From assembly GCA_002104905.1 (NCBI GenBank), contig MCFE01000143.1, positions 1 to 64,000 on the forward strand: 64,000 bases of DNA, given 5' to 3'. The notes beneath the pieces are model-generated. The model did not search any database and was not told the origin of the DNA. It was given only the letters and a program-made list of their open reading frames with translations. Position numbers and translations under genes: made by a program. Positions 15,664-22,853 of this stretch are shown piece by piece (the first letter of the stretch is position 1; each line of letters starts with the position of its first letter). Source of the DNA: Basidiobolus meristosporus CBS 931.73 (Eukaryota; Fungi; Basidiobolomycota).

Positions 15664-17070
15664 ATGGTCAATGTCAAGAAAATTTGCTGTATTGGTGCTG
15701 GATACGTCGGTGGTCCCACATGTGCCGTCATTGCCTACAAATGCCCTGACATTCAAGTCACTATTGTAGATGTTAACCCTGGACGTATTGAAGCTTGGAA
15801 CTCCGACAAGCTTCCCATCTATGAGCCTGGCCTTGAGGAAGTTGTATTCACCGCTCGTGGTAGAAACCTGTTCTTCTCTACTGACGTTGACAAGGCTATT
15901 CAAGAGGCTGATCTTATCTTCGTCTCTGTCAACACCCCCACCAAGAAGAGCGGTATGGGTGCCGGGTTTGCCGCTGATTTGGCCTATGTCGAAACTGCCA
16001 CAAGACGTATTGCCGAAATCGCCACCAGCTCCAAGATTGTTGTTGAGAAGTCTACCGTTCCTTGCCGTACTGCTCAAAGCATGCGCACCATCTTAGAGGC
16101 CAACTGCCGCGATGGTATTCGCTTTGACATCCTTTCCAACCCCGAATTTCTTGCTGAAGGTACCGCCATTGATGACTTGTACAACCCTGACCGTGTCTTG
16201 ATCGGCTGCCTTCAAACCCCTGAGGGTCTTGAGGCCCAAAAGGCTTTGGTCGAGGTCTACACTCACTGGGTTCCTGAAGACAGAGTCATCACCACCAACC
16301 TCTGGTCATCTGAGCTCACCAAGCTTGCTGCTAACGCCCTCTTGGCCCAACGTATCTCTAGCATTAACGCTCTTAGTGCTGTTTGCGAAGCCACTGGTGC
16401 CGATGTTGATGAGGTTGCCTATGCTTGTGGTAAAGATAGCCGTATTGGTCCCAAGTTTTTGAAAGCCAGTGTTGGCTTTGGTGGCTCATGCTTCCAAAAG
16501 GATATCCTCAACTTGGTCTACCTCAGCAAGCAATTCCATTTGGAAGAGGTTGCTGACTACTGGCACCAAGTTGTCATCATGAACGAGTACCAAAAGAAGC
16601 GTTTCGCTTCTCGTATCATCAAGTGCTTGTTCAACACCATTACCCACAAGAAGATCGCCGTTCTTGGATTCGCCTTCAAGAAAGATACCGGAGATACCAG
16701 AGAATCCGCCGCCATCACCTTGATTAAGGATTTCATCCAAGAAAATGCCAACATCACCATCTATGACCCCAAGGTCGAGGAGGAACAAATTTGGTTCGAT
16801 TTGACTGAACCTGGTCTCGTCAGTGATGAGCAGAAGGTCAAGAAGCAAGTTACCATCTGCAAGGACCCCTACCAGGCCACTGCCCAGGCAGATGCCGTTG
16901 TCGTTGTCACCGAATGGGACGAATTCAAGACTCTTGACTGGAAGAAGGTCTATGATAACATGCACAAGCCTGCCTTCGTCTTTGACGGACGTCTTATGCT
17001 TGATGCCCCCAAGCTCCGTGAAATCGGCTTCAAAGTTGAAGTTATTGGCAAATCCACTTTAACCAATTAA
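15664..17070 (+). CDS. UGD1: UDP-glucose 6-dehydrogenase, intronless
   Basis: [14 protein letters not shown] Rossmann motif, [15 protein letters not shown], catalytic [24 protein letters not shown] and FDGR. Strong codon bias. The true ATG is at 15664; the ORF track starts at TTG 15607. Confidence 0.97.
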
Positions 17071-17967: not shown

Positions 17968-20145
17968 CTATTCATCATCCTCCTCAGCAGTGCTATAGGG
18001 ATATTGGTGAGTAAACCTAACATTGGTATCGGAGAAACCTGAAGCATACCTCAGCCAGTCAATGAAGGGCCGTGCGCTCTCCTGAACCTTTGTGGTGGTT
18101 CTGGAAAGCGAGTTCCACTTGATGAAAGACTCCTCGTCAACAAGGTCGATATCGTAGAACAGTTTGAATAGCGCGGGCGTCTTTGGAACTGCATGGTCAT
18201 TGAGGAGCAAAAACTCTTCCCAAGCGCGCAGGAATGCAATCTGATCCTGTTCAGTGCGCACGAACTACGTTTTGGCGAAGGGTTAATCCCACGTGTAAAC
18301 AACTGGTCCGGCCAGCATTGAAATACCTTTTTGCACAAAGCGTTTCTTCCATTGACTTCCTTGAAGAGGTTATTCAGATCCGAGAACAAGCTGGGAATCA
18401 GGACGTTGAAAAGCTCCTTTTTGGAAAGGTTGTTTCTGAACTCAATTCGCGTGATCTCCTTGAATTCGTCGTTGAGGCGTTTTCCTGGTTCTTCATCCTT
18501 TCTTGCGTCGATGAATCGCTTGAGATCGTCAATCAACCCTTTGTACTCATGTCGCTTGCCAGCACCGTTAGTGCTCCTGTTTCCGTTTCCACCCTCTGGC
18601 CCATTCATTTGTTGCTTCCTATTGGATCCAATCAATATGGTCATTAAAACAGTAGGAAAGGATACCATCCTTGTGTTCACTTACAGAGAGTTGATTCTTC
18701 CTTGCTCATCATCAGATGGCTCTAATACTCTCAACCACGATTTGTCCTTGTCAGCCTAGAATACCCACAATGAATACAATTACTTAGATATGCTGCTTCT
18801 AGAGATTACCTTTCCGCTTAACAAATGGTTCAACGAAACCTTCTCGTTCTTCTCCCGACGACGAAGCGGTTGGAGAGCTTTCGTATCTTCGTGCGTTTCC
18901 TTCTCAGGGGTAGTCAGAGGTTCGGCCGGAGATATAGATCTACTGGATAGTTCGTTGGAGGTAGGCATCAAAATGGGAGTGTCGCGCGCACAATCTTGCT
19001 GCTCCAAACCCACATCCGATTGGAGGGTTCTCGAAGGAGGGGACAAAGACCCGGTTTCAAGTCGTCTAGCAAAAAAGGCCTCGGGTGAATGATGTTCGCC
19101 GGAGGGGTTGCCTCTCCACCCACGTAGTTTCTGCATATCTTGGGCAGGTGGAGGGCCGGTGGAGGTGCGTTCTTTTAACTCGGCACGTCCATGGGCAAAG
19201 TTGCATTTAGGCCCGTATTGGCAAAAATTCTCCTTCATGAATCTTTCGCAGAGCTTGGTCTTGTACAAAGGGTTGTCGTTGCTTTCCCTAATCTTATTTT
19301 CTACGGTGGATGGCTTCTCGTTGGTCTGGGGCTTCTTTTCCTTCAACTCGACCACGCCGTGGGCAAAGGTGCATTTCGGTCCATAAGGGCAAAATCCTTC
19401 GGTCTCAAACCGTTCACAGAGACGAGTTTTGTACAAAGGATTGTCATTATTGCCAGGAGCGGGGGAGGTGGACAGAGTTTTCTCAATTCGAGAGCGATCG
19501 CGTGGCTCGTAGCGCTGTTCGGGGCGCTGCTCTTGCCGTTGACGGGTGATTATGTGACGTTGAGAGTCAAGCGGCAAAGCAATGTTCAGATTTTTAAGCT
19601 TGTGCTCCATGCTATCCACGTTGCTTCGTTGCCGTGGTTGAATAATGTTGAGCTTGTTTGTTTCAATGTAAACGGACGCTTGTCTCAGGACATCGCCCAT
19701 CGTCCTAAAAACTGACTTCTCAATTGCTTGAGCGAGCGTCAGCCAGGATAGATTGAGACCTTCACCAGTGGGTAGTACACGAGCATTGTCGGCAAGTCGG
19801 GCCAGGTAATATACCACTCGCTTTGGTTGACTCCCACTAAGGTATCTTAATTCAGCTCGGAAATTTTTATCAATAGTTAATTCCTTGATGTTCACTCCGG
19901 TGATGTTGATGGTTTCGCGGATTGCACATCTACACAAATAAGGTGGGGAGGAGAGGAGGGTTAACAACTTTGAAAAAGGGATGAGTGGTCGGAAGAGCGT
20001 ACTTCAATTCGTCTTCGTCGCCAATAACCTTCCCCTTGGGAGGAGTCCAGTGACGCTTATTGGAAAATGTATCGTTAATTAATAGGAACTCGAGAGACCG
20101 CTGTTGACGAAATATGAGAAAGCCGGTAGAGTGAATAGTATTCAT
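17968..20145 (-). CDS. Nudix(NUDT2-like)-tandem CCCH zinc finger-W2 domain fusion protein, 6 exons, 621 aa
   Basis: Exons 20145-20003, 19929-18810, 18755-18685, 18618-18327, 18264-18050 and 17992-17968 are joined by GT-AG introns of 54-73 nt and give 1866 nt in one frame. Nudix motifs WTPPKG and KRVVYYLA, two YKTxLC-x8-C-x5-C-x3-H fingers, and C-terminal W2 AA-boxes (FYDIDLVDEESFIKW, PFIDWLSTAEEDDE). Confidence 0.88.
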
Positions 20146-20572: not shown

Positions 20573-22853
20573 TTAGTAATACAAAGTGTTGCGAAGCTTC
20601 TCCTTGAAGTCTGCTATGACCGCGGTTTTCTTGTCAAGCAGAGCTTCCAACTCCTTTGCATGCGCACCAATGTTGGCGGAGTTAGACTTGGATGCTGAGG
20701 AGGCACTGAGCTTCAACTTTTGCATCAACATCGTCTCCATCTGGCAAATGTATGTGATCTCACGAATGGTGCTCTTGTGGCTCTTGATTAGATCCCCGAG
20801 GCCTTCCAGCTGAGAGCTGCCTGAACTAAGGTAACTATCCTCAAATGACGAAACTGATGATCTACGGCTGCGGCTCAATTCAGCACTATTATACTGAGGC
20901 TTGTAACGAGCCTCTTGGGATACTCGAGGCTCGCGGGCTGGAGGAGTGGGAAGTGCGAAAGTCTCTTCTATGTTATCTTCCTCACTAAAGAACTCGGGAG
21001 GGGCCTCGTCATGGATCAGGTTCTCGGGTTCACTTTCCTGGACCTCTTCAAAATCGCCGCCGTGCTCTTCCTCGGCGTTGTTGTCCACCTCCTCGACTAC
21101 ATCGGTTTCGGAGCTGGAGTACCCATAGTATCCGGTCTCTTCGTCCTCGTCTTCGTCGTCGTAGTCGGTGTCTCCCTTCAATTCCTTGACTCTGTCGGCG
21201 TATCTGAGGGTGTTCAGTGAATGCTCACTGTTGGACATATTAGGAGAAATGGTGCCGATCATGCATGTGCGGGAGTTGCCGATGAAGGAGTCCTTCAGCA
21301 CTTGGGTGAGCTTGCTCTGTCTGAAGGGAAGATGCTTGCCTCCTTGGTCTAAGGCACGGATGCACTCTTTGAGTGCTAGCAAACTCTTGTTGATTTCAGC
21401 GCCCTCCATTCTTGTTTTGTTGTCCGATTCGCCACGGTCGGCACCACGCTCGCTTCCTGCAAGATCGATGAAACTAAATTTACCGTGGATCTTGCGTCTG
21501 TCGCTTTTGTGCTTCAACACCATTTGCAAAATGGCATGAGAACGAGAGGAATCGGCATTCGCCCCGGTGGTACCGGTGGTTCTGGCGGAGTGCCCGTAGT
21601 TGAACACCTCCAATAGCTCATCGACACATGAAATCTCGATTTCACGGATGCCGACAATGACGACGTTCTTGTTCCCATCCTCACGAGCAGCAAGCTTCTT
21701 ACGGTTGTTAAGGAGATCGTGTAATTGTCCCTGGTAGATCTCGTAGAAACTGACATAGCAGGAAAGATGCGAGAATTGCTCGTCATCTAAGAGGGTGAAA
21801 ATATCCCTGCCGGCAAGTACATATAGGCCTTGTTCGGCATCAAGCATTGTGAAGGTTTTACCACTACCAGTTTGACCATATGCAAAGCAGGTGGCTTTAC
21901 CTCCTTCGAATATATACTCGACAAGAGGGAGGGCGGTACGAGTGTAGACTTGCTCGTTGTCGGCGGTAGAATCAAACACTTCGTCAAAGACAAACTCGTG
22001 TTGCTCTACATACTTGGTCAGGTCCACTCTTAATTTAGGCTCATTAACAGCAAGCTTGCGACGCCCGGCAACACTAATGATATCGACCTCGCCCTTCTTG
22101 AGCTCCCTGGAGCTCAAAGGTCTTTTACGAATGCAAACTCGGATTCTATCACTTAGGCTTCCGGTTGTGGTAGGGGCGGTGGATTTTCTACGACTGGGAG
22201 CAGTAGACTGTCTACGCATGTTAGGGTTTGAAGATACAGGTGGAACACCATAAGCACTGTTCATAGTGGTTCTTCTCTTAACCACTGGAATAGGGTCACT
22301 CTCCTTGACACTACTGTCGGATTCTTGTAATTTCTGGACAATAGACATAGAGCGTGTCATCCGACGCTGCTGAGGACCAGCATCAAGTTGTTCGGTAGTT
22401 CGCCTAGTTCGGCGTGCTTGGTCAACAGCACGAGATGAAGGGGGCACGGGAGGTCTTTGCGAGGCTCGCAATGGAGCAATGGATTGTCTGGAATAAGCAG
22501 AGGTGCTTCTGGACAAAGATGAAGAGAAATCACCAGGATGCTCATTTTTTACAGCTTGAATGAGTTGAAAAAGTCTTTTTCTGTCGTCCATACTATTCAC
22601 ACCAAGAGTTCCGTAATCCTGCATAGTAACCTATAAACAATGTCAACGCAATGCTCCTTCGGCAACTTACGTTCCTTAAGAAAACTTACCTTTGAAAGCT
22701 CCTCTATAGTAGTGATGCCATTGGCAGCAAAGCTAACAAGACATATAGCAGTGAGCAGAAGTGTGAATGAGTAAGCCAGCGAGGGACAAAGTACCTTGGA
22801 TAATAGTGCTCCAAATCAGCTTGTCTTAAAGTTTCTAAAATGACAGCGCTCAT
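20573..22853 (-). CDS. Kinesin-13 family (KIF2/KIF24-like) with N-terminal SAM domain
   Basis: Motor motifs IRVCIRKRPL, EPKLRVDLTKY (KVD-like loop 2), FAYGQTGSGKTFTM, SSRSH, FIDLAGSERG and HLPFRQSKLTQVLKDSF. Two short upstream exons (MSAVILETLRQADLEHYYP / FAANGITTIEELSK) complete a SAM-like domain. Internal motor and C-terminal coil. Confidence 0.92.

Follow-up and report, generated by a model that had tools for sequence, protein, structure and literature searches.

A degenerate NUDT2-type Nudix domain, two CCCH zinc fingers and an eIF5-like W2 domain in one protein of Basidiobolus meristosporus and its non-Dikarya relatives: a candidate for mRNA-selective translational control

We analyzed a stretch of 64,000 nucleotides from the fungus Basidiobolus meristosporus CBS 931.73 (positions 1 to 64,000 of contig MCFE01000143.1, assembly GCA_002104905.1; the window). 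A minus-strand gene at 17968..20145 encodes a 621-residue protein, K493DRAFT_407074 (P0001), which joins a Nudix domain related to the diadenosine tetraphosphate (Ap4A) hydrolase NUDT2 to two CCCH zinc fingers and a C-terminal W2 domain. The Nudix-CCCH-W2 gene and the fusion are real. We see an even chance that the protein is an mRNA-selective regulator, in which an RNA-bound mimic of eIF5 would act on eIF2-beta or the preinitiation complex and the Nudix domain would bind a nucleotide, a cap or a 5' end with little or no turnover.

The coding region was rebuilt from the raw sequence. Six exons (minus strand; 20145-20003, 19929-18810, 18755-18685, 18618-18327, 18264-18050 and 17992-17968) give a spliced coding sequence of 1866 nucleotides, corresponding to 621 residues plus the stop, and the translation matches K493DRAFT_407074 residue for residue. 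The six-exon open reading frame drawn in a preliminary description of this DNA thus stands, and the motifs quoted there (GFLIFR, WTPPKG, KRVVYYLA and the C-terminal WLSTAEEDDE) are all found in the translation. A protein search with the translation of exon 2 alone returned the 621-residue database protein at 100% identity. All five introns are GT..AG and short (73, 54, 66, 62 and 57 nucleotides), which together with a GC content of about 45% gives the region a eukaryotic character. Pfam recognizes NUDIX at residues 8-119 (29.9 bits, cut-off 21.1), zf-CCCH twice (E = 8e-19) and W2 at residues 549-621 (62.9 bits, cut-off 30). Exon 2 runs unbroken for 1120 nucleotides, from the last two-thirds of the Nudix domain through both fingers into a long disordered region, so that the Nudix-finger junction needs no splicing; the W2 part is joined to the rest via three predicted introns. 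Each of the small exons carries residues that are kept in orthologs, such as DKSWLRVLEPS in exon 3. The fusion is independent of splicing, because a three-domain protein from Coemansia spiralis (P0106, 587 residues) lies on a single intronless open reading frame (L005). A relative on a Logan contig (L002) likewise combines the fingers and W2 with a decayed Nudix region in a single reading frame of 545 codons. Retention of intron 2 in Basidiobolus (window 18780-18809, at the intron start) would add nine further codons, VISRSSISK, before a stop; the predicted product would have the Nudix domain and the zinc fingers without W2, a possible regulated isoform.

The Nudix domain comprises residues 1-140 (19653..20145, minus strand, crossing intron 1). 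A profile built from 42 family Nudix domains (alignment A1) and searched against the PDB matched human NUDT2 over the whole domain (3U53, E = 5e-28) and the Caenorhabditis elegans Ap4A hydrolase (1KT9, E = 1e-25), and in a second tier the African swine fever virus (ASFV) decapping enzyme g5R (E = 4e-10) and Dcp2 (E about 3e-5). The AlphaFold (AF2) model has a predicted local distance difference test (pLDDT) score of about 90 across these residues, and Foldseek aligns it with Ap4A hydrolases (1KTG, 3U53) at target-normalised template-modelling (TM) scores of 0.86-0.92 and a root mean square deviation of 1.5-2.0 Å; both identify the Nudix alpha-beta-alpha fold. With the full-length model, the top 50 Foldseek matches were Nudix domains only. 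The Basidiobolus domain has the fold of NUDT2 (3U53, 1KT9), is 31-34% identical to it in sequence and shares its WxPPKG motif, specificity tyrosine and conserved lysine, whereas NUDT2 is a stand-alone protein of ~150 residues with the box RETQEEAGI and the Basidiobolus domain has the box RETINITGV and is fused to RNA-binding and W2 domains. An ungapped alignment with human NUDT2 equates W33 with W38, P36 with P41, G38 with G43, E44 with E49, R52 with R57, E53 with E58, N56 with E61, I57 with E62, Y77 with Y82 and K84 with K89. NUDT2 Y82 is the tyrosine that confers specificity for diadenosine polyphosphates (ApnA) (PMC5389931). Eight columns are fixed in the family: W33 in 41/42 and P36, K37, F71, Y77, K84, G105 and W110 in 42/42 domains. 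The two Basidiobolus species are 94% identical in the Nudix domain and 80% in W2, with mean identities to other orthologs of 51% and 33%, respectively, and the Nudix domain is the best-conserved globular part after the fingers. Judged by sequence comparison, it is under strong constraint and purifying selection. A word-indexed search with P0001:1-145, restricted by word and length limits, gave no match to stand-alone NUDT2 paralogs.

The pocket is fixed against a degenerate metal site. The Nudix box spans residues 38-60 (GKVIGDEDELKCAIRETINITGV; 19893..20034, minus strand, crossing intron 1), and its translation carries NI in place of EE, as first reported: N56 and I57 occupy the positions of NUDT2 E61 and E62, so that both EE positions of the canonical box GX5EX7REUXEEXGU are non-acidic in Basidiobolus. 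Across the 42 domains the Gx5E position is E in 40 and D in 2, and the arginine of the RE pair is R in 40. The RE glutamate is E in 27 and lost in the other 15 (N 8, V 4, A 2, S 1). At the first position of the EE pair we find E in 25, D in 13, N in 2 (both Basidiobolus), A in 1 and Q in 1; E does not occur at the second (I 19, T 7, L 7, A 4, V 3, S 2), and the family box consensus is RExxEIxGL, with RETFETTGL in a Mucorales member. The question of whether the EE-to-NI change is fixed in orthologs therefore has a divided answer: the second glutamate is gone in 42/42, but the first is E or D in 38/42 and N only in Basidiobolus. We rejected EE-to-NI as the family state, the loss of the second glutamate alone being family-wide. 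Intact boxes (REVKEEAGL and RETEEEAGL) occur in one of the closest canonical relatives, the metagenomic tandem-Nudix protein P0153.

The L002 relative (Logan SRR9894653, L002:965-2602) lacks the Nudix box altogether, together with WxPPKG, Y77 and K84. The family fold profile nonetheless recognizes its Nudix region (36 bits), and its fingers and W2 domain are kept, which argues that the core job of the protein needs no catalysis. The L002 gene is intronless and adjoins an RPS13 gene.

Nudix domains with degenerate boxes offer parallels. NUDT21/CFIm25, a factor in mRNA metabolism, binds both Ap4A and RNA and hydrolyzes neither. Its box is RLxxEIxGR (PMC5389931), and its EE-to-EI change is the same as in the consensus RExxEIxGL. 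NUDT9 variants with RILGEE or REFGKK boxes are inactive, the NUDT9-H domain of human TRPM2 (RILRQE) binds ADP-ribose and does not hydrolyze it, and Mg2+ coordination requires an intact Nudix box (PMC6461439). The human NUDT2 crystal entries 4ICK and 4IJX contain the E58A mutant, altered at the RE glutamate. Like the Basidiobolus domain, NUDT21/CFIm25 and TRPM2 NUDT9-H combine a degenerate box with a retained fold and ligand pocket; they belong to other Nudix subfamilies, related at the superfamily level only, and their inactivity is proven whereas that of the Basidiobolus domain is predicted. A fixed pocket, a degenerate metal site and strong purifying selection are together what one would expect if the domain were a pseudoenzyme that binds a ligand, or an enzyme whose chemistry is much reduced or altered. 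On these grounds the Basidiobolus Nudix domain is probably catalytically inactive; for the family as a whole, inactivity appears only somewhat the likelier state.

The two zinc fingers, each with its lead-in, occupy residues 212-238 (PLYKTRLCERFETEGFCPYGPKCTFAH; 19359..19439, minus strand) and 268-294 (PLYKTKLCERFMKENFCQYGPKCNFAH; 19191..19271, minus strand) and are recognized by Pfam zf-CCCH and by PDB entries of the tristetraprolin (TTP) family. Both follow the pattern PLYKT[RK]LC-x8-C-x5-C-x3-H, with the lead-ins PLYKTRLC and PLYKTKLC. Searched against the PDB, residues 205-305 matched TIS11d (1RGO, E = 3e-17) and TTP (1M9O) best, followed by two other TTP-type entries, the fingers aligning separately. 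In 31 full-length orthologs C219, C228, Y230, C234, F236 and H238 of finger 1, and the Cys/His ligands, Y286 and F292 of finger 2, are invariant or nearly so. Measured from the histidine of finger 1 to the first cysteine of finger 2, the spacer counts 36 residues (residues 239-274; 19251..19358, minus strand), of which the last seven are the finger 2 lead-in. The two TTP-type fingers and the 36-residue linker reported earlier are borne out by the exact spacing, the count and the matches to 1RGO and 1M9O. Across 48 members the spacer varies from 26 to 75 residues and is 18 in none; its middle is unconserved, has a pLDDT below 50 and is predicted to be disordered.

These fingers resemble those of TTP/TIS11/ZFP36 proteins (TIS11d 1RGO; yeast Cth1/Cth2 and Schizosaccharomyces pombe Zfs1) in being paired, in the YKTxLC lead-in, in the exact C-x8-C-x5-C-x3-H spacing and in the stacking Tyr/Phe residues. 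They differ in that both are of the 'finger 1' type (C-x-FAHG-x-x-EL), in that the lead-in has R/K where TTP has E, and in the spacer, which is 18 residues long in TTP. A C-terminal NOT1-binding motif was found at the end of no ortholog; here the C-terminus is the W2 domain ending WLSTAEEDDE. We thus rejected assignment to the TTP family proper, for the linker is not of 18 residues and the NOT1-binding motif is absent.

Residues 461-621, encoded by exons 4-6 (17971..18572, minus strand), form a complete W2 HEAT domain by Pfam, PDB profile, AF2 and Foldseek. Its pLDDT is about 94-97 in the full-length AF2 model; modelled alone, the domain has ten helices, a pLDDT of 89.7 and a predicted TM score (pTM) of 0.83. 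With the domain model Foldseek returned solely W2 domains at E = 0.02 or better (eIF5, eIF2B-epsilon and DAP5; TM 0.6-0.72), and the domain is therefore a complete W2 of ~160 residues that extends beyond the 80-residue Pfam core. A profile of 30 family C-termini (alignment A2), searched against the PDB, matched the C-terminal domain (CTD) of human eIF5 best (2IU1, E = 2e-17, 66.8 bits), followed by other eIF5 entries (E = 1.6e-16 to 2.7e-10, 63.8 to 43.5 bits), eIF2B-epsilon (E about 8e-11, 45 bits), eIF4G1 (E about 2e-9, 41 bits) and DAP5 (E = 7e-4, 22.7 bits). By this comparison the family W2 is closest to the eIF5-CTD among PDB sequences. AA-box 1 (residues 579-592, YDIDLVDEESFIKW; 18115..18156, minus strand) aligns to YDADLLEEEVIISW of human eIF5, and AA-box 2 (residues 609-621, FIDWLSTAEEDDE; 17971..18066, minus strand, crossing intron 5) to FIKWLKEAEEE. 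The family is invariant at Y579 and W592 of AA-box 1 and at W612 of AA-box 2. In 21/30 members T or S occupies position 615, which is T615 in B. meristosporus, and the acidic run A-E-E-E that follows completes a CK2-type S/T-x-x-E site. The W2 domain with AA-boxes that the preliminary description had placed at the C-terminus is confirmed by Pfam, by the eIF5-CTD profile match and by these invariant aromatic residues. A word-indexed search with the W2 region returned family members only.

The CTDs of eIF5, eIF2B-epsilon and 5MP use two AA-boxes to bind the K-boxes in the N-terminal tail of eIF2-beta, and all three have CK2 sites in AA-box 2, where added negative charge raises the affinity (PMC12439599). 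The features of an eIF2-beta-binding W2 domain, a W2 HEAT fold and AA-boxes 1 and 2, are present in the Basidiobolus protein, and from homology it is a reasonable inference that the family W2 binds eIF2-beta. The fold, both AA-boxes and the CK2-type site in AA-box 2 are shared with the eIF5-CTD and with 5MP/BZW. At the N-terminus, which has the Nudix fold, Pfam gave no match to the eIF5 GTPase-activating (GAP) domain at E = 0.01 or better. 5MP likewise has a W2 domain without the eIF5 GAP domain, and for this reason the Basidiobolus protein could compete for eIF2-beta. It differs from eIF5 and 5MP in that its N-terminal partners are wholly different, with neither the eIF5 GAP domain nor the 5MP N-terminal region, and in that RNA-sequence-specific fingers would restrict its effect to particular mRNAs.

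The three domains are separated by disordered linkers, as residues 147-216 and 302-432 are predicted to be disordered. The linkers are unconserved except for a short motif at residues 424-437 in exon 3 (KDKSWLRVLEPSDD; 18708..18749, minus strand; family consensus EKxWMKVVELSxxE). The two Basidiobolus species are 100% identical in this motif, which contains DKSWLRVLEPS in B. meristosporus and is kept across phyla.

An exhaustive HMMER search returned 85 proteins at E = 1e-30 or better. When the fetched proteins were classified by domain queries, 51 had the Nudix domain, the tandem zinc fingers (TZF) and W2, 32 had Nudix and TZF (many of these partial) and 15 had TZF and W2. The named three-domain members are without exception non-Dikarya fungi, and all non-Dikarya lineages sampled have relatives. 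Named relatives come from Zoopagomycota, Kickxellomycota, Glomeromycota, Mortierellomycota, Mucoromycota, Chytridiomycota and Olpidiomycota. Members were found in Kickxellomycotina (Dimargaris, Dispira, Kickxella, Coemansia, Smittium, Furculomyces, Zancudomyces), in Glomeromycotina (Gigaspora, Funneliformis, Diversispora, Entrophospora, Ambispora, Geosiphon), in Endogonales and Mucorales (Jimgerdemannia, Umbelopsis, Lichtheimia, Apophysomyces, Rhizopus, Mucor, Pilobolus and others), and further in Basidiobolus, Mortierella, Olpidium and many chytrids. In the Sorochytrium protein P0077 (Blastocladiomycota) we detected TZF and W2 and no Nudix domain. Among the named relatives retrieved we saw no member from Dikarya and none from animals or other non-fungal organisms, the metagenome and Logan matches not being taxonomically placed.

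The architecture is already published, and the B. meristosporus gene is an ordinary member of its family. The survey 'Analysis of NUDIX enzymes across fungi reveals previously unrecognized diversity' (BMC Genomics 2025; PMC12210691), which is purely computational and includes B. meristosporus CBS 931.73 in its genome set, defines a 'subfamily A' of 84 proteins, found in fungi only and mostly carrying W2 (PF02020) and zf-CCCH (PF00642). It places the subfamily as a distant relative of NUDT2, reports conservation of NUDT2 residues W38, P41, G43, K89 and Y82, names Ap4A as the substrate from docking, with favourable docking of Ap4A, Ap3A and NAD+, and in its supplement describes two C-x8-C-x5-C-x3-H domains and an eIF4-gamma/eIF5/eIF2-epsilon domain (PMC12210691). 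RNA sequencing shows subfamily A genes to be expressed in Mucoromycota and Mortierellomycota (PMC12210691). Pfam finds PF00293, two PF00642 and PF02020 in P0001 and likewise in orthologs; W33, P36, G38, Y77 and K84 are present and kept in 40-42/42 members; and the origin is a fungus outside Dikarya. With the same architecture, NUDT2 kinship, pocket residues and fungal restriction, the protein belongs to subfamily A. The accounts differ over the box, which is 'well-preserved' in PMC12210691 and in our alignment has lost the second EE glutamate family-wide and both in Basidiobolus. The preliminary description knew of no characterization of this architecture and held that an already described family would speak against its proposal; such a description exists, since PMC12210691 lists subfamily A. 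Literature searches covering the three-domain combination, work on Mucorales and surveys of the TTP family found that paper alone. Fungal NUDIX subfamily B is a fusion to the IF-2B domain PF01008 (PMC12210691, Table 2), and Nudix fusions to translation-factor-type domains may have arisen more than once in fungi.

The preliminary description had proposed a dead sensor coupled to binding of AU-rich elements and to eIF2-beta engagement, a candidate function that is plausible, indirectly supported and compatible with all findings. In such a scheme one polypeptide would act as an mRNA-selective post-transcriptional regulator of translation or decay. Each finger would bind a UAUU-like half-site, and the spacing of the half-sites would probably be variable, because the spacer is long and unstructured. 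Like its counterparts in eIF5, eIF2B-epsilon and 5MP, the W2 domain would dock on the eIF2-beta tail that carries the lysine boxes, with eIF3c or eIF1 as possible further partners. By tethering this eIF5-like W2 to transcripts, the fingers would alter the use of the ternary complex or the preinitiation complex on the bound mRNA, repression being the likelier direction. The Nudix domain would bind a dinucleoside polyphosphate, a cap or an RNA 5' end and so serve as a sensor or as a second RNA-end anchor. The most specific version, in which an eIF5 mimic tethered to RNA would be switched by a catalytically dead NUDT2 fold that senses Ap4A, a cap or a 5' end, an arrangement invented in fungi and operating in the whole family, we consider unlikely.

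Several observations weigh against an mRNA-selective regulator with little or no turnover. W2 domains have partners other than eIF2-beta, such as Mnk1 for eIF4G and DAP5. The 36-residue spacer departs from the 18 residues of TTP, so that the RNA target is not readable from TTP. Outside Basidiobolus the box still has three acidic residues in most members (Gx5E, RE and the first E/D), and an extra acidic residue, E or D at position 104, is present in 23/42; because these are often retained, residual or altered catalysis is possible outside Basidiobolus. Some Nudix enzymes with non-canonical boxes are active, the GDP-mannose glycosyl hydrolases among them (PMC5389931). The sole paper on the family argues from docking alone for an active Ap4A hydrolase (PMC12210691), and our literature search found no experimental work on any Nudix-CCCH-W2 family member.

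The first alternative is that the protein is an active Ap4A/ApnA hydrolase and that the fingers and W2 merely place the enzyme on mRNAs or on the translation machinery. Ap4A is made by aminoacyl-tRNA synthetases. The NUDT2-like fold and pocket residues, the favourable docking of Ap4A, Ap3A and NAD+ (PMC12210691) and the retention of E44, E53 and E/D at position 56 in most members outside Basidiobolus would all suit such an enzyme. However, docking is no test of catalysis, none of the 42 members has the second EE glutamate, the RE glutamate is missing in 15/42, and Basidiobolus has neither EE glutamate. Comparable box changes inactivate NUDT9 (PMC6461439), the equivalent of the RE glutamate is the residue changed in the E58A mutant form of NUDT2 in 4ICK and 4IJX, and L002 has lost the whole box with the fold and the remaining protein kept. 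We regard an active hydrolase as improbable, though it deserves some weight, and leave a small share of probability to some reading other than those considered here.

The protein could also be an RNA-targeted 5'-end enzyme, with fingers that pick AU-rich mRNAs and a Nudix domain that decaps them or removes 5' phosphates in the manner of Dcp2 or NUDT2. TTP-family proteins normally recruit decay enzymes, and the second-tier Nudix matches are the decapping enzymes ASFV g5R and Dcp2. NUDT2 itself acts on RNA 5' ends, turning ppp-RNA into p-RNA (PMC8616924). The losses of catalytic residues that count against a hydrolase count equally here, and a 5'-end enzyme would leave the strongly conserved eIF5-like W2 unexplained; we think it quite unlikely. 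An annotation artefact, in which two or three adjacent genes were falsely joined through predicted introns, is very improbable and was rejected: W2 is reached in Basidiobolus only across three such introns, but the Nudix domain and both fingers share the 1120-nucleotide exon 2, the exon 3 motif is kept across phyla, relatives including the whole Coemansia spiralis protein are intronless, the same N-to-C domain order recurs in at least 51 proteins from independent annotations, and subfamily A is expressed in Mucoromycota and Mortierellomycota (PMC12210691).

Upstream of the gene (window 20573-22853, minus strand) lies a gene whose 719-residue product has SAM domains at the N-terminus and a kinesin motor (SAM_1, Kinesin and Microtub_bd in the precomputed Pfam annotation). 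We take its layout to resemble that of KIF24-type kinesin-13, which would be curious in a non-flagellated fungus. Downstream (window 15664-17070, plus strand) is the gene for a housekeeping UDP-glucose/GDP-mannose dehydrogenase of 468 residues (UDPG_MGDP_dh N, central and C domains). In another Logan relative (P0128, 616 residues) the Nudix domain and two fingers precede a C-terminal region of ~170 residues that phmmer does not recognize as W2; it could be a W2 that has diverged or another kind of helical domain.

Beyond PMC12210691, our analysis adds that the second EE glutamate is lost throughout the family while the pocket is invariant; it also adds the eIF5-like W2 assignment, the consistently long finger spacer, a conserved and unexplained exon 3 motif and the splice-independent proof of the fusion. 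Were the Nudix domain a ligand-binding pseudoenzyme, the literature label 'Ap4A hydrolase' would have to be corrected for a family whose box is degenerate in every member. Members occur in fungi that are tractable or of medical relevance (Mucor, Rhizopus, Lichtheimia, Apophysomyces, Basidiobolus and Spizellomyces). An mRNA-selective regulator of the kind proposed would directly connect the recognition of specific mRNA sequences with the eIF2-beta/eIF5 node of translation initiation, the first natural protein to do so. It would also give Ap4A or cap-like nucleotides a concrete effector in eukaryotic translation, a setting in which Ap4A signalling is poorly understood. If it were a sensing switch, a stress alarmone would directly gate the use of eIF2 and the preinitiation complex on defined AU-rich mRNAs, and Dikarya would have lost this route of control. 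The family is an appealing candidate for a form of translational control that would be new and is open to testing.

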